DNA of 64,000 nucleotides, from NCBI GenBank assembly GCA_052426225.1, contig JBNJNM010000009.1:992001-1056000 (forward strand), in the 5' to 3' direction. Each line of letters opens with the position of its first letter. Within the stretch, counting starts at the first letter, position 1. Positions 15,178 to 61,504 of the stretch are shown piece after piece. The stretch is from Zancudomyces culisetae HAW-14-8 (lineage: Eukaryota > Fungi > Kickxellomycota). The notes under the pieces were generated by a model that saw only the letters and a list, made by a program, of their open reading frames with translations, ran no database searches and was not told the DNA's origin. The position numbers and the translations under genes were made by a program.

Positions 15178-18100
15178 ATGATTAAACTTGTTCTTATACC
15201 CATACTTTGTCTGACTAGGCATTCACTAGCAACGCCTGCATTTAATGTAGTCAACGGCGTTGATGTTAATGGGCAGAAATGTCCACTACCAACTCTAAAC
15301 AGACTTGCCTGCCCACTTATTTGTGTTACTGATATTTCTAATTGTCCGGAAGGTACCAAACCCAGTTGTGGTAAGGGACTAACATACTGTCAAGATGGCA
15401 CCTGTAAGAAGACATGCGCTAGCGTAACCTCTTCGCCATGTTATTGTAAACAGGACCTTACGCTGCTTTCAGATAATGTAAAAGAAATGTACCCCTGTGG
15501 TGATTACATTGCTAGTAGAGTTCAAAACTTTAACGCATCGGATTCATCGATAACAAAAAACGCCTGCCTAAATGCTCTTGGTATCAGTGAGATTGACGAC
15601 TGGAGTCTTGGCTCGGAAGCAAGCAGCATATTTTTGGATTGTCCTACCGTTGCTCCACCAACAGTCACACTAAAAGAGCCTATGTTTCTTGCATTTTGGA
15701 CAACTTTGGCTCTGCAATTTGTTACATTTATTTCCTGGTTCTTCTACAAGCGATCCGCGGAAAGTGCGATGAAGGAAAGAGGTGTAGCACGTAATAACAG
15801 TGATTCAAGTCTAGTGAGTGATGAAAAAGCATATTTATCAAAACTAGAAAAGGATGGATTATACAACCATGAAAAGGATGACTTTGATAATCAATTCAAC
15901 GGGCATAGGGCAAGTTCCGCGCAGTTTTCATCAACTGGTGTGGATTTGGGATACTTTAAAATTAAATCATATAAATCAAGCACTTTAGGGAAAATCGGTC
16001 TATACAATATATACTTAACAATGGCACTGTGTTCTTCATTCCTCTTTACGCTATGTCTGGATTACTATGGACTTTTAAATGGCGTTGGAGCAGGGCTATT
16101 TTACGCAAATTATGACTGTCTTGGACAGTATTTCATAGTGGTATGGTCGTTTTTGCTTGTATGGGTTATTGTTCTTTTGGTGTTCCGCGAACGAATCTTG
16201 AACTTTTTCCGAATTAATACCACCCTAAAAGAAGGTGATTATGTTCAAGTCGAACAAAAAAAGGATCCAACAGTACTACAAAAAATTAGGTACTCATTCC
16301 TTGTAAGATTGGTTCTTAAGTGGGAAAAGTGGTATAAACACCGGTTCGGCAAAGACATGATTGTACAAACATACAAAATAATGAAAGGAACAAATGGAAC
16401 AAGTTATTTCATGTATAACAACGTACGGTATGTCTATAATGAACAAGAGGCAACATACCTACCCATTACATACAATCTTGGTGAAACCAACAGACAACTT
16501 CTCCAACATGTCGGCGGTCTAACCTCAGAAGAGGCTACCAGAAGACTAGAACGAATAGGACCAAATTTTGTTCCAGTACGCGTTCCAAGCTACCCGAGAG
16601 CATTGTTTAATGAGGTTATGGGATTTTTCTATATCTATCAATTTATGATGCTTTGGCTTTTCTATTACTATGCATACTGGCAAATCGGTATAGTTAACAC
16701 TGTAGTAATATTGGTTTCAATCCTGATCAAAGTAATAACTGGTGTTAAAGCAACAAAGAGATTGAGTGACCTTGCCGAACACAGAGATATCTGCCATGTT
16801 ATCAGGGATGGAGTAGTTACAGAAATAAGCACTACAGATCTGGTGGTTGGAGATATGCTGGTACTTGAGGGCAATAAATTTTCACCATGTGACTGTGTAT
16901 TAGTATCCGGAGATGTGGTTGTGGACGAGTGCTCATTGACAGGCGAGGCAATGCCAGTGAGAAAATTCCCCGTTAAAGATGACGACAATTTGTATGAAAA
17001 ATTATCTTCAGGAAGACTAAGCACACTTTTGGCTGGAACACGCGTTTTACAAAGCAACCCAACAAACAAAAGCCATGCATATGGGCTGGTTACTGCCACT
17101 GGAATCACCACTGAAAAGGGCCAAATGATACAGAAAATACTTTACCCTACCGAAATCCTATTTATCTTCAACATTGAGATGAGAGTGGTATTGGCTATCT
17201 TGGGAACCCAGGGTGTCATTTGGTTCTGTCTTGCATTGTACTTGCTGAAGTACAGTCCTGTTGGTTCATGGTTTTTTGCTACCTATGCACTTATCGAAAT
17301 TATAAGTCCTATTTTGCCTGCTGCTCTGGTTATTGGACAATCTGTTGCTGTTCAACGATTAAAACAGAAGGGAGTGCACTGTGTCGATGTTCCAAGGGTA
17401 ATGCTTGCTGGAAAAATTCAAATATTTTGTTTTGATAAGACAGGGACATTGACAAAGGAGGGGTTGGATTTTTATGGCCTCGTACAGACGGAATATGGAC
17501 GTGACTCTAATCTTGAAAACATGTTGAGTCTAGGAAACCCCAATACTGTTAAAGAGCTAACTGATTCATCAACCGATAATGTCAAGGATTTTGGTGCATT
17601 GACTGAGCTTGCATTGGGTACTTGCCACTCTGTAACAGAGCTTGATGGAAAATTGATAGGAAACCCAGTAGATGTTGAGATGTTTACAAATACACACCGT
17701 ACAATTAAGCTAAACGAATCTGATAGCAGTAAAGCTATAGTCAGCCCACCTCAAGATGTAAAATCAAACGCAAATTTCATTACCGATCATGCTGAGGTTG
17801 TCAAGCAATTTGAATTTATTCACCATCGACAATCAATGAGTGTGGTTGTAAGGTATCCAAATTCAGCCAATTCACGTCTTTTGCACGTATTTGCTAAAGG
17901 ATCCTTTGAAAAAATTCTTGAAAAGTGTAACCCGGGATCAATCCCAGCAAACTACCACTCGATAGCAGAGTGTTATGCAAAGCAAGGTTGTTATGTTCTG
18001 GCTATTGCTCACAAGGTAGTAGACGAAGTTCAGGCTACTAAGAGAGCTGCAAATCTTAAATTAGATACAGACGGAGCCGAAAATTCAGATGAGTGGAACA

Positions 18101-19560
18101 GGGATGAAATCGAATCGGACTTGAATTTGGTATGTTTGATCTTGTTCAAGAACCTACTGAAAGAGGATACTGGTGCAGCAATAGATGAGATAAAGAAATC
18201 AAATACCAGAGTTGTAATGATTACAGGTGATGCGACACTAACAGGAATAAACATAGCAAGGAAGTCGGGAATGATCAATTATGGAAGAAGAGTGATCTTG
18301 GGTGATGTTTCTGAATCCGAAGCACAAAATAGACCCAACCAGTCTCCTAATGGCATTCAAAACACAGATACGGTTGCATGGACTGATGTGGATACAGAGC
18401 AAAGTGTCGATATACACGAACTTGAACAGTCAGGAAGCGAGCCATATGACTTAGCACTTACCAGTAGAGCCTTCAACAGGCTACACAACGCAGGAAAGCT
18501 GGACAAATCCATTTTGATGAATACAAGAATTTTCGGGCGAATGACACCAAAGGATAAGGTTGATTGTATCAAGCTACACATGAAGTACGGGATTACTGCA
18601 ATGTGTGGCGATGGAGGAAATGATTGTGGCGCTTTACGTGTTGCACATGTGGGGCTGGCCATGTCAAACTCTGAAGCTTCTATTGTCTCACCATTTAGTA
18701 CTGCCAAAAAGAGCGTGTTTTCGTGTGTAGAGTTATTGAGTCAGGGCAGAGGTGCGCTAGCAACTTCATTTGCCAACTACAAGTTCTTGATGCTTTATGG
18801 CCAAACCATGGCTATGTTTAAATTTTTTTCCATGTACTTCTCATCCCTTCTTTCTCTACCAGTATGGATAACTATTGATGGACTTATTACTGTTGGTATG
18901 TCCTTGTCAATTTCGCTGAGTAAGCCCGTGGAAAAGCTAGCCAATATCAGACCTACAGCCCGTTTGTTTGGTCCTACAACCATGCTTTCTACTGTGGGCC
19001 AGGTTTTGATAAATTGGACTTTTATGATAGTGTGCCTCATTATCCTATACAGACAGCCTTGGTATAGATGTCACGAATTGGATGCTTCCACAATTGATTT
19101 GAAGATGTGGTGGTTGCTTGGAGACAACTATGAGGCCATGACGGTTGGAATTACAATTATGTTCCAGTTTGTCAACAGTGGGTTTATCTACAACTTTGGT
19201 TATAAATTTCGTCGATTCTGGTTTAGGAACTACGTTCTAGTTATAATTTATCTGGCCTTTATTTCTGTGCTAACTGTTGTTGTCTTGTTGCCACCAAATG
19301 TCATTGGATGTCTTTACAGAATGAACTGTGGTGATAAGGATGTTTTGCAAGAGTTGGGATATAAACCTCCAGGCATGTACATCGAACCATATAATATCCC
19401 ACAAGGACACAATGTCTATCCTCCCAAGTTTAGGCTTTTCATGTGGATATACTGCCTTGCTAATGTATGTGTTGGAATATTGTGGGAGGTTCTAGTCGTT
19501 ATTGGTCCTATCGGTGCATACTTTTCAAAAAGACACGGTAAAAAGAATTACTACCAGTAG
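15178..19560 (+). CDS. P5-type P-ATPase with N-terminal signal peptide and Cys-rich domain, 1460 aa, intronless
   Basis: DECSLTGE actuator motif, CFDKTGTLT phosphorylation site (about 17434-17454), KGSFE, MITGD, MCGDGGNDCGAL hinge, and the P5-type features CHS, GNPVD and RPTARL. Confidence 0.93.
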   Translation: MIKLVLIPILCLTRHSLATPAFNVVNGVDVNGQKCPLPTLNRLACPLICVTDISNCPEGTKPSCGKGLTYCQDGTCKKTCASVTSSPCYCKQDLTLLSDNVKEMYPCGDYIASRVQNFNASDSSITKNACLNALGISEIDDWSLGSEASSIFLDCPTVAPPTVTLKEPMFLAFWTTLALQFVTFISWFFYKRSAESAMKERGVARNNSDSSLVSDEKAYLSKLEKDGLYNHEKDDFDNQFNGHRASSAQFSSTGVDLGYFKIKSYKSSTLGKIGLYNIYLTMALCSSFLFTLCLDYYGLLNGVGAGLFYANYDCLGQYFIVVWSFLLVWVIVLLVFRERILNFFRINTTLKEGDYVQVEQKKDPTVLQKIRYSFLVRLVLKWEKWYKHRFGKDMIVQTYKIMKGTNGTSYFMYNNVRYVYNEQEATYLPITYNLGETNRQLLQHVGGLTSEEATRRLERIGPNFVPVRVPSYPRALFNEVMGFFYIYQFMMLWLFYYYAYWQIGIVNTVVILVSILIKVITGVKATKRLSDLAEHRDICHVIRDGVVTEISTTDLVVGDMLVLEGNKFSPCDCVLVSGDVVVDECSLTGEAMPVRKFPVKDDDNLYEKLSSGRLSTLLAGTRVLQSNPTNKSHAYGLVTATGITTEKGQMIQKILYPTEILFIFNIEMRVVLAILGTQGVIWFCLALYLLKYSPVGSWFFATYALIEIISPILPAALVIGQSVAVQRLKQKGVHCVDVPRVMLAGKIQIFCFDKTGTLTKEGLDFYGLVQTEYGRDSNLENMLSLGNPNTVKELTDSSTDNVKDFGALTELALGTCHSVTELDGKLIGNPVDVEMFTNTHRTIKLNESDSSKAIVSPPQDVKSNANFITDHAEVVKQFEFIHHRQSMSVVVRYPNSANSRLLHVFAKGSFEKILEKCNPGSIPANYHSIAECYAKQGCYVLAIAHKVVDEVQATKRAANLKLDTDGAENSDEWNRDEIESDLNLVCLILFKNLLKEDTGAAIDEIKKSNTRVVMITGDATLTGINIARKSGMINYGRRVILGDVSESEAQNRPNQSPNGIQNTDTVAWTDVDTEQSVDIHELEQSGSEPYDLALTSRAFNRLHNAGKLDKSILMNTRIFGRMTPKDKVDCIKLHMKYGITAMCGDGGNDCGALRVAHVGLAMSNSEASIVSPFSTAKKSVFSCVELLSQGRGALATSFANYKFLMLYGQTMAMFKFFSMYFSSLLSLPVWITIDGLITVGMSLSISLSKPVEKLANIRPTARLFGPTTMLSTVGQVLINWTFMIVCLIILYRQPWYRCHELDASTIDLKMWWLLGDNYEAMTVGITIMFQFVNSGFIYNFGYKFRRFWFRNYVLVIIYLAFISVLTVVVLLPPNVIGCLYRMNCGDKDVLQELGYKPPGMYIEPYNIPQGHNVYPPKFRLFMWIYCLANVCVGILWEVLVVIGPIGAYFSKRHGKKNYYQ

Positions 19561-57033: not shown

Positions 57034-57642
57034 CTAGTCTCTGTTGTATTTGGCTACAACCTTGGCAAAGTATGCACCATGGTTAACGGCGGCTTCGTTC
57101 TCCTCAACGTTTGCTGGCTTAGATCCATCTGGTCCAGAAAGAACTCCTGGGCCATATGCCGAGCCTCCAACAGTCTTTTCGTATGTTCCTACTGCCTTGT
57201 TTGGACCAATTGGTACATAGATCATACCAAGGTGAGTGGCATTAATGATAAATGAGAGAGGTGTGGTTTCCATACCACCACCCTGTGAACCGGATCCAAA
57301 GAATACTCCGTACATTTTTCCTAAAAGAGCACCAGCAACCCAGAGACCACCTAGGGAATCAATGAATGATTTTACTTGACCTGGAAGAGTACCAAATCTT
57401 GTTGGGAATCCGAATATGTAAGCATCTGCTTCTTTCATCGCATCAACGGTGTATATAGGGACACTTTCATCCTTTGGTGGGGCGTGCATCATTTCCAAGA
57501 CATTTTGTGGCAATGTTTCGGCAAACTGGAAAAGCTTTACGTTTACGAGTCCAGTTTGTTCCAATCCCTTAACAACTTCCTTTGCGAGACCGGCCATGTG
57601 TCCGTATGTTGAATAGTAAATTACGTGAACTGTTGGTGCCAT
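57034..57642 (-). CDS. Flavodoxin-like NAD(P)H:quinone oxidoreductase (WrbA/Pst2/Ycp4 family), intronless
   Basis: YYSTYGH FMN loop, FGFPTRFG, GSQGGGMETT, HLGMIYVPIG, GGSAYGPG. Confidence 0.95.
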   Translation of the reverse strand: MAPTVHVIYYSTYGHMAGLAKEVVKGLEQTGLVNVKLFQFAETLPQNVLEMMHAPPKDESVPIYTVDAMKEADAYIFGFPTRFGTLPGQVKSFIDSLGGLWVAGALLGKMYGVFFGSGSQGGGMETTPLSFIINATHLGMIYVPIGPNKAVGTYEKTVGGSAYGPGVLSGPDGSKPANVEENEAAVNHGAYFAKVVAKYNRD

Positions 57643-59675: not shown

Positions 59676-60623
59676 GCTATTGGATAAACCTCAGAACTAT
59701 ATATCTCTGGGGTTTTAGTAGTTGGCACGAACCGAAAAGTCACAAGTGGCTGTCAGCAGTGTTAGGTGTATTAAATAATTCACTGAATAATAGTAAAGTA
59801 AAAAAAACACAATGGCTGACTGGTGCTTCGTTTGAATAACCTGTGCTAGGAGACAATGTAAATCAGCAAACAAGTCATGCTATATGCCTGTATAAGCAGT
59901 CAAGAGATGCCAGACTTACTGAGGATTTTTATGTTGATAAATATATGAGTGCGCGAATAGCAATATTGCCTCGGCTATGCTCTAGTCCAACCTTCTTGAT
60001 TCTGTTGGTTAGCTTTCTTTGTTGGATGATAAAGGCTGGAAAATATTGGTTTGTGGTGGTAATTCCAAGGTAATTGTAGAATATTTTCTTTTTGAGCGGT
60101 TTTTGCTATTGGCTAGGTTGTTGAAATATTGGACTTAAGAGTGGGTCGTTGATGTACTTGAGGAAAGCTGTCGAAAAAGCTGGGTAATTATTGACAACAG
60201 ATAGCTATTTTACTTCAATTCATTGGAGACACATGTGAGGGAGAGTTTGGTGTGACAATTGCATTTCTGATGTATTTAGAAAAAAATAGACGCCAGAATT
60301 ACTTAATAGCAGAGGGGGGGAATAAAAAAAATCAGACATTGTTCCAAAAATTAGCGAATCGAAGTAAAGCCTCGACCGAAATCAATGAGATGTGTGGAGG
60401 GGAGGAAAAGTATTGGGGGTGTAGTGGGAAATCTTGTGACAGACAAAGTAGGCAAGAAATGGGGGCAGAGCAAACAGAACTATTAAAAGAAGTGATCCAT
60501 TTTTGCTATTGGGTGGCACCTATATTTTTATATATAATTTATATGTATGCACTGAAATAATGGGTGTAAGCAGTCAATCGAAATGCGTATAGATTTGCTT
60601 TTTGGCGAAAGAAGCCCAATAGC
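59676..60623. promoter_or_regulatory. Four copies of GCTATTGG/CCAATAGC upstream of the metallothionein
   Basis: At 59676, 60105 and 60505 on the plus strand and 60616 on the minus strand. The copies at 60105 and 60505 share TTTTTGCTATTGG. Confidence 0.5.
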
Positions 60624-60757: not shown

Positions 60758-60765
60758 TATAAATA
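60758..60765 (+). promoter_or_regulatory. TATA box of the metallothionein gene
   Basis: TATAAATA about 140 bp upstream of the ATG at 60899. Confidence 0.45.
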
Positions 60766-60898: not shown

Positions 60899-61504
60899 AT
60901 GAGCTCATGCGATAAGAAAACCTGCTGCAAGGAAAAGGTTGCATGCACCAAGGAGAGTCAGGCCTGCCAATGTACATCTGGAGGCGCATGCTGTTGTGAG
61001 GCTGGCAAGTGCCAGTGTGCAGGAAAGAAGGGCGAATGCTGCAAAGAAAAGGGTGAATGCTGCAAGAAGGGAGAAGCATGCAAGTGTACATCCGGAGGCC
61101 CATGCTGCTGTGAGGCTGGCAAGTGCCAGTGTGCAGAAAAAAAGGGTGAATGCTGCAAAGAAAAGGGTGAATGCTGCAAGGAGAAGGCTGCATGCTGCAA
61201 GAAGGGAGAAGCATGCAACTGTGTATCTGGAGGTACATGTTGTTGCGAGGCTGGCAAGTGCCAATGTGCAGGAAAGAAAGGTGAATGCTGCAAGAAAGAT
61301 TCCAGCGTCTGTTGCAGATGTACAGAAGACAAAAAATGTATCTGTAAAGAAGGAGAGTGCAAGTGTGCAGGAAGACACATATGCCAGTGCAGAGAGGGCA
61401 AGGAATGCACTTGTAAAGATCCATGCAAATGTGAACAAGCAACATGCGAATGCAAGGAAGCAAGTGGCAAGCCATGCCACTGTGAATCTGGATGCAAATG
61501 TTAA
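60899..61504 (+). CDS. Long modular metallothionein, 201 aa, 56 Cys
   Basis: About 28% Cys in CxC, CC and CCC motifs, rich in K/E/G/A, no aromatic residues, no signal peptide. ATG in an A-rich context with an upstream TATA box. Confidence 0.88.
   Translation: MSSCDKKTCCKEKVACTKESQACQCTSGGACCCEAGKCQCAGKKGECCKEKGECCKKGEACKCTSGGPCCCEAGKCQCAEKKGECCKEKGECCKEKAACCKKGEACNCVSGGTCCCEAGKCQCAGKKGECCKKDSSVCCRCTEDKKCICKEGECKCAGRHICQCREGKECTCKDPCKCEQATCECKEASGKPCHCESGCKC
60962..61297 (+). repeat. Three tandem coding modules within the metallothionein
   Basis: Units at 60962-61075, 61076-61210 and 61211-61297, each encoding ACxC(T/V)SGGxCCCEAGKCQCA(G/E)KKGECCK with near-identical DNA. Confidence 0.92.

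Follow-up and report, generated by a model that had tools for sequence, protein, structure and literature searches.

Predicted metallothioneins in Zancudomyces culisetae: a long modular member and a dispersed gene family bordered by LINE tails

What does an intronless, cysteine-rich reading frame in the genome of Zancudomyces culisetae HAW-14-8 encode, and how was it built? Z. culisetae (Harpellales) lives as an obligate symbiont in the hindgut of larval mosquitoes, midges, and blackflies. No paper pairing metallothionein (MT) with Zancudomyces or Harpellales was found in the literature searched, which comprised sources outside subscription journals; the leading papers returned for related taxa are silent on it, and the genome paper for the species does not mention metals (PMC12611240). 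The frame lies in a 64,000-nucleotide stretch of DNA, hereafter called the window, and its features are collected in Table 1. The account given here is of a cytosolic, modular, high-capacity MT and the history of its family, and we hold it as a whole with good confidence; expression, metal binding, metal preference, the regulator, and the mover are parts of it that we infer.

Table 1. Features of the window MT gene and its surroundings (window positions)
Feature	Position	Strand	Remarks
MT-like ORF	60899..61504	+	intronless, 201 aa, 56 Cys; long member of the 20-gene family; housekeeping context
Core 1, 7-Cys, CxC-x5-CCC-x4-CxC	60965..61018	+	aa 23-40
Two 21-bp CC heptads after core 1	61022..61063	+	aa 42-55
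Core 2, 7-Cys	61079..61132	+	aa 61-78; DNA 91% identical to core 1
Three CC heptads after core 2	61136..61198	+	aa 80-100
Core 3, 7-Cys	61214..61267	+	aa 106-123
Single heptad after core 3	61271-61291	+	aa 125-131
C-terminal 64-aa domain	61310..61501	+	19 Cys, nine CxC pairs
TATA box TATAAATA	60758..60765	+	at -141 of the window gene
19-bp conserved upstream box, core TTYGCTA	60494..60512	+	candidate metal-sensing-factor site
Second conserved upstream box, 20 bp	60424..60443	+	conserved in upstream alignment
Inverted second TTYGCTA site	60352..60358	-	at -547
Third TTYGCTA site	60102-60108		window gene only
FQR1/WrbA-type quinone reductase	57034..57642	-	divergently transcribed, 3.3 kb from the window MT gene

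Translation of the 201 codons that precede the stop yielded a protein with 56 Cys (27.9%), 37 Lys, 25 Glu, and 23 Gly and with no Phe, Trp, Tyr, or Leu, which confirmed the length, cysteine count, and lack of aromatic residues reported in a first-pass annotation. The same annotation had described three seven-cysteine cores followed by two, three, and one heptads, and this arrangement was recovered at aa 23-131. Its eight CxC pairs at aa ~147-201 were also present, with a ninth lying just before them, from aa 139, so that aa 138-201 contain nine. Over the whole protein, the clusters amount to 15 CxC, 8 CC, and 3 CCC. The three cores share 82-91% of their DNA sequence, one heptad after core 1 and one after core 2 have an identical 21-mer in common, and Tandem Repeats Finder returned periods of 114, 135, and 21 bases. 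The earlier proposal that duplication had occurred at two scales is supported. The maximum hydropathy over 19 residues was 0.43, and neither a hydrophobic segment nor a signal peptide was present.

It is unlikely that the repeat array is an assembly artefact, given that the source assembly was built from PacBio HiFi reads at 48x (PMC12611240) and that the cores diverge by 9-18%, the modules differing from one another mostly at synonymous sites. The 2016 Illumina assembly contains a contig bearing the FQR1 gene that stops before the MT gene is reached. Inspection of 254 kb of the genome revealed no other frame of at least 100 aa with more than 11% Cys, family frames excepted, and the cysteine-rich window frame is therefore not attributable to chance. 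Reverse-strand and shifted ORFs overlapping the gene were rejected as shadows of its repeat. The neighboring quinone reductase is 99% identical to a Z. culisetae FQR1; no evidence of a functional link between it and the MT gene was found, and the FQR1 contig of Smittium culicis has no cysteine-rich frame within 7 kb upstream. Elsewhere in the window (15178-19560, + strand), a 1460-aa P-type ATPase was observed with a long, cysteine-rich, signal-peptide-like N-terminal extension before its ATPase domains.

A search of the organism's own genome revealed 19 further family genes on seven contigs. A DNA-level search, from which 40 matches were scored, recovered 19 full cassettes and the window gene and no incomplete cassette. 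The family thus has 20 members, a count supported by two upstream sequence patterns that gave 20 and 19 genome matches, all at family genes. The first-pass annotation was accurate for the lone gene and had missed its membership in this dispersed family. Eighteen of the 19 paralogues are intact; each specifies a different protein of 131 aa, with 33-34 Cys and one Tyr as its aromatic residue. The remaining copy, L027 (G000:C21 ~2213615-2214008, - strand), is a pseudogene: a frameshift close to codon 39, with a stop further on, has reduced it to a frame of 46 aa, and its promoter boxes have stayed intact.

The window protein and the paralogues have in common an N-terminal heptapeptide and the C-terminal domain, the latter being 70-77% identical between the window protein and all 19 paralogues, with a dN/dS of ~0.12 in that comparison. 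Between these elements the paralogues carry two degenerate, older cores, some of whose cysteines have been lost, and no heptad arrays. The window cores are 54-68% identical to either paralogue core, and the paralogue cores are ~54% identical to each other. That the window cores are closer to one another than to the paralogue cores implies that the triplication and the heptads are specific to the window gene and arose after the split. Together with the failure to find a homologue outside the species, this upholds the earlier suggestion of an independent expansion.

Assignment of the family proteins as metal-chelating MTs, which we consider likely to be correct, follows from their composition, the Lys-flanked CxC spacing, and the lack of aromatic residues and of any hydrophobic segment. 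The Cys content of the window protein lies within the ~15-33% in CxC, CC, and CCC clusters that characterizes the MT superfamily, and the protein is likewise hydrophilic, free of aromatic residues, and devoid of a signal peptide. A Pfam search of 13 family members at an E value of 10 gave no match, MT families included. Searches of the genome for PF00131 and phytochelatin synthase were blank, as were their controls, and are thus uninformative. Outside the species, where MT genes often lack annotation, no homologue was found by a word-index protein search, and a full HMMER search over 1.84 billion representatives returned only the partial Z. culisetae protein AX774_g4253. PDB sequences and metagenome contigs yielded no relative of the family. 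The first ESM Atlas match for a paralogue was an MT cluster (PF02068, score 0.81, 177 shared features), which is a weak lead only. As no Pfam MT model and no relative among known MTs was matched, the MT call rests on composition.

The pattern of substitution is indicative of purifying selection on the family genes. dN/dS was 0.33 among the 18 intact paralogues (dS 0.11), ~0.12 between the window gene and the paralogues (dS ~1.4), and 0.10-0.14 between the internal cores of the window gene. The coding alignment contains no gap columns, as compared with 12-64 per 200 bases of flank, and 33 of 34 Cys columns are invariant, eight of them with synonymous TGT/TGC changes. Taken with the conserved promoter boxes described below, these sequence data support an MT that is probably expressed, and the MT-like nature proposed in the first-pass annotation gains support from the selection as well as from the Cys pattern and the missing aromatic residues.

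Upstream of the coding regions, all but one of the 19 paralogues have a TATA box near -150. The 19-bp box has exactly 20 genome matches at up to two mismatches, one before each family gene and nowhere else, and every one of the 19 genome matches to the 20-bp pattern also lies upstream of family genes. Fifteen of the 19 paralogues also have the inverted TTYGCTA site, close to -500. Upstream identity between the window gene and the paralogues is ~62% overall, with the TATA box and the two boxes almost perfectly kept. No canonical MRE, Ace1, or Mac1 consensus site was found upstream. TTTGCT occurs in the Mac1 element, and the TTYGCTA core recalls copper-fist sites. The genome's single copper-fist (Ace1/Mac1-type) DNA-binding domain was located at G000:C14:266341-266457 (+ strand, 79.9 bits). 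The most likely mode of regulation would be metal induction acting on the conserved TTYGCTA boxes, with this copper-fist factor as a plausible reader, to which we give somewhat less than even credence.

The surroundings of the paralogues were read for 5 kb on each side. The cassette common to them begins sharply near -620 and reaches at least about +830. For 17 of the 19, an ankyrin-family or trypsin-like gene is found no more than 5 kb away (0.7 expected), the order of the genes varying. Housekeeping genes surround the window gene, which is 286 kb from the nearest gene of either family. Island genes seen were all intronless and mostly in the same orientation as adjoining LINE tails. The trypsin-like genes (L016:6749-7888, + strand, and ~25 related places) encode a signal peptide and a hydrophobic C-terminal tail; the catalytic His is absent and the Ser mostly so, and the family probably consists of GPI-anchored pseudo-proteases. 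The ~1000-aa ankyrin-repeat family (L025:1-3027, - strand), with 50 motif matches in G000, is dispersed together with the cassettes of the MT and pseudo-trypsin genes and has a conserved, F-box-like N terminus that gave no Pfam F-box match. A 270-aa frame at L016:9189-9998 (- strand), also without a Pfam match, resembles by eye DIRS/Crypton-type tyrosine recombinases in their N-terminal part.

A 135-base junction repeat gave 36 matches in the 19 loci, all 36 on the MT strand, of which 14 end at -661 to -622 and none is at the window gene. The matches are partly circular, the model having been built from the same loci, and the evidence lies in their fixed position and in the reversed controls, which gave no match. 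In two loci a zf-RVT frame ends within the repeat, and in others the repeat runs into decayed ORF2, by which it is recognized as the 3' portion of an abundant LINE, made up of the ORF2 end, the 3' UTR, and the A-run. A structured RNA, of the H/ACA or another type, was rejected as its identity: the repeat encodes the LINE ORF2 C terminus and showed no Rfam match and no covariation. At least 14 of 19 paralogues have a LINE 3' tail on the same strand directly against the cassette, which starts right after the A-run; five copies have only a decayed tail, seen by alignment and not by HMM, and in six copies a LINE tail is present at the other end of the cassette as well. At least two LINE lineages, rather than one clade, are represented among the upstream tails, and no target-site duplications were identified at the cassettes. 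Terminal inverted repeats and Helitron termini were not evident by eye at the aligned edges, and the 3' boundaries are ragged.

Two further observations concern the LINEs themselves. A young, abundant family in G000 comprises many ORF2 frames of 1278-1281 aa that are 92-94% identical to the query piece, and a second family is present at ~37% identity. The young elements form head-to-tail arrays of 5'-truncated copies (e.g. C21:2604377-2606420 and C13:1943646-1952128), suggesting insertion at their own A-tails.

Given these borders, ectopic recombination between same-strand LINE remnants would be the most likely means of spread, and we favor it by a modest measure. It would move whole, promoter-bearing cassettes, consistent with the lack of truncated copies. 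LINE-mediated RNA transduction, either by read-through from an upstream LINE or by a cassette RNA that acquires the tail of a LINE and integrates at an A-run, is the nearest competitor, and we consider it possible though distinctly less probable. The intronless, mostly co-oriented island genes would fit it, as would cassettes that begin right at an A-run and in six cases meet a LINE tail at the far end, the many young head-to-tail LINEs, and the preference of the fungal L1-clade element Zorro3 for poly-A tracts near promoters (PMC1965478). Retrotransposition leaves many 5'-truncated copies, however, and none was seen among the 40 scored DNA matches; the expected target-site duplications were likewise not seen, and Zorro3 gave 0/30 3' transductions (PMC1965478).

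The preferred history, with recombination as the mover, would be as follows. Multiplication of a CxC-E-x-G-x-CxC unit would have given an ancestral MT, which split into two lineages (dS ~1.4). In the copy at the window locus, triplication of the 7-Cys core and addition of 21-bp CC heptads would have increased capacity per molecule. In the sister gene, encoding 131 aa with 33-34 Cys, capacity would have been raised through gene number, a promoter-plus-gene cassette of 1.5-1.8 kb having been dispersed, amid ankyrin and pseudo-trypsin cassettes, to 19 sites. Gene conversion would keep these copies alike (dS 0.11). A more far-reaching reading, in which integron-like accessory islands use LINE 3' tails as joints to shuffle and amplify MT, GPI pseudo-trypsin, and F-box-like/ankyrin cassettes, and in which the resulting dispersed, co-regulated 20-gene family was selected against larval-gut metals with a new metal-response element, is put forward tentatively, as a speculative extension.

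The 19 dispersed copies are 95% identical in coding sequence and exchange sequence by gene conversion, an ongoing process to judge from mosaic haplotypes and from the pair L019/L021, in which cassette identity dips to 90-94% between flanks that are mostly 98-100% identical. Incompatible site pairs made up 26% within 30 bases as compared with 51% beyond 100, and none of 5000 permutations gave a value as low. An independent, older Illumina assembly also has one MT copy, beside the ankyrin gene of L022. This allele (L036:7779-8127, GCA_001969505.1), annotated as AX774_g4253 in a truncated 73-aa call, shows 17 differences from L022 and only 6 from L024, as would result from inter-locus gene conversion or from short-read collapse.

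Whether the number of copies was selected is a separate matter. It might instead reflect passive hitch-hiking in repeat-rich islands, or in part assembly duplication, with no selection for dosage. Several paralogue pairs are 96-100% identical over kilobases, 6.2% of BUSCOs are duplicated in the HiFi assembly, the paralogue dN/dS of 0.33 exceeds the values at deeper splits, and some module cysteines have been lost, all of which could be so explained. Against this, however, the members of most near-identical pairs share a contig, on which 20-95 kb separates them, rather than occupying separate haplotigs, and 12 distinct paralogue loci on seven contigs remain when near-identical groups are collapsed. 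With 18 of 19 paralogues intact and all distinct, and promoter boxes kept in every copy, a purely passive origin of the copy number appears rather unlikely. The near-identical island duplicates were seen on C8, C15, C21, and C23 of G000, several of them inverted.

In a functional MT, the Cys residues, which have Lys beside them, would be reduced and as thiolates would enclose Cu(I), Cd(II), or Zn(II) in clusters, module by module, and arithmetic by analogy with the Cu5-(7-Cys) clusters of Cryptococcus and Tremella (PMC4755600) would give a load of up to about 40 Cu(I) or ~18 divalent ions per molecule. The first-pass annotation had further proposed that the N-terminal CC/CCC part prefers Cd/Zn and the C-terminal CxC part Cu, making a two-metal MT. 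The N part does contain three CCC and seven CC, compared with nine CxC in the C part, CCC/CC mark CdMTs and CxC/CKC mark CuMTs in Tetrahymena (PMC4862169), and the two parts have evolved under different regimes, the C part conserved and the N part remodelled. A CxC-(E/K)-x-G-x-CxC unit nevertheless fits both the C-terminal pairs and the second half of each core, CCC being a CxC in which x is Cys. Its spacer similarity (p ~0.006 against shuffles, an optimistic value given that the unit was picked by eye) points to one ancestral 4-Cys unit in both parts. CKC accounts for only three of the nine C-terminal CxC pairs, the Tetrahymena rule is lineage-specific, and Cys pattern alone predicts metal preference poorly across lineages. 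The K:N ratios of the two halves (27:1 and 10:0) are high throughout, which in snails points to divalent metals in both, although that rule fails in tests (PMC7796288). The division into a Cd half and a Cu half is thus weak, and we think it unlikely.

Least probable is an intracellular Cys/Lys/Glu-rich structural or redox protein that chelates no metal, such as a cross-linked wall, septal, or holdfast component or a thiol sink for host ROS: the lack of an MT family match, the head-to-head quinone reductase, and co-amplification with surface pseudo-proteases and ankyrin proteins, suggestive of host-interaction or dosage-demanding products, could be read in its favor, but the strictly spaced CxC pairs with neighboring Lys and the lack of aromatic residues are the signature of an MT, there is no signal peptide or hydrophobic segment, and a low-confidence AlphaFold model with no confident fold (pLDDT 56) is expected of an apo-MT, though uninformative.

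The window protein is long but not a record, and the term "giant" applied to it earlier was an overstatement. CnMT1 and CnMT2 of Cryptococcus neoformans have 122 and 183 aa, and TmMT of Tremella mesenterica has 257 aa and 57 Cys (PMC4755600). These MTs, which form Cu5-(7-Cys) clusters, resemble the window protein in tandem 7-Cys units, comparable total Cys, and internal duplication (PMC4755600). Their unit, however, is a Neurospora-type all-CxC box (three CxC and a single C), in contrast to the window core with its nested CC heptads, and they are encoded by multi-exon genes in one or two copies, whereas the present family is intronless, Lys/Glu-rich, 20 genes strong, and from Zoopagomycota. 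No sequence similarity between the two groups was found. In Tetrahymena, CdMTs are up to 191 aa long with up to 54 Cys, and the family 7 MTs (7a CdMT, 7b CuMT) share a module/submodule hierarchy, CCC and CC clusters, and 26-30% Cys with the window protein (PMC4862169). The 7b repeats, CKC-x2-5-CxC, resemble its C-terminal domain; the 7a submodule is C2-3X6C1-2X6 with CXCCK ends, whereas the window protein has CC-x5 and no CXCCK terminus. The likeness is convergent.

Saccharomyces cerevisiae CUP1 and Candida glabrata MT-IIa form near-identical tandem arrays at one locus. Dosage through gene number is common to these and to the present family, which differs in having 19 diverged, dispersed, LINE-tail-bordered copies on seven contigs, interspersed with genes of unrelated families. 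Zorro3 is likewise a non-LTR element with a C-terminal zinc-binding region and poly-A insertion near promoters (PMC1965478), a targeting that fits the constant position of the LINE tails before the cassette; it has not been seen to carry 3' flanks, whereas LINE tails here border host-gene cassettes. Surveyed mushroom fungi have one to three characterized MTs per species, of 32-59 aa (PMC12508003). What is unusual in Z. culisetae is the dispersed, promoter-carrying, LINE-bordered family of 20, which is larger than any fungal set found described.

The family has a module type of its own and combines, in one genome, two routes to capacity, namely internal expansion and 19-fold dispersed amplification. 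The 201- and 131-aa proteins, with the same C-terminal domain, are a natural pair in which the effect of the CC/CCC modules on metal load could be compared, and the 19-bp box is a footprinted candidate metal-response element. The arrangement would also expose a LINE-linked route for moving promoter-bearing genes in fungi. If real, the family would point to strong metal pressure on a commensal of the mosquito and blackfly larval gut, a proposal open to test given that the fungus can be cultured.
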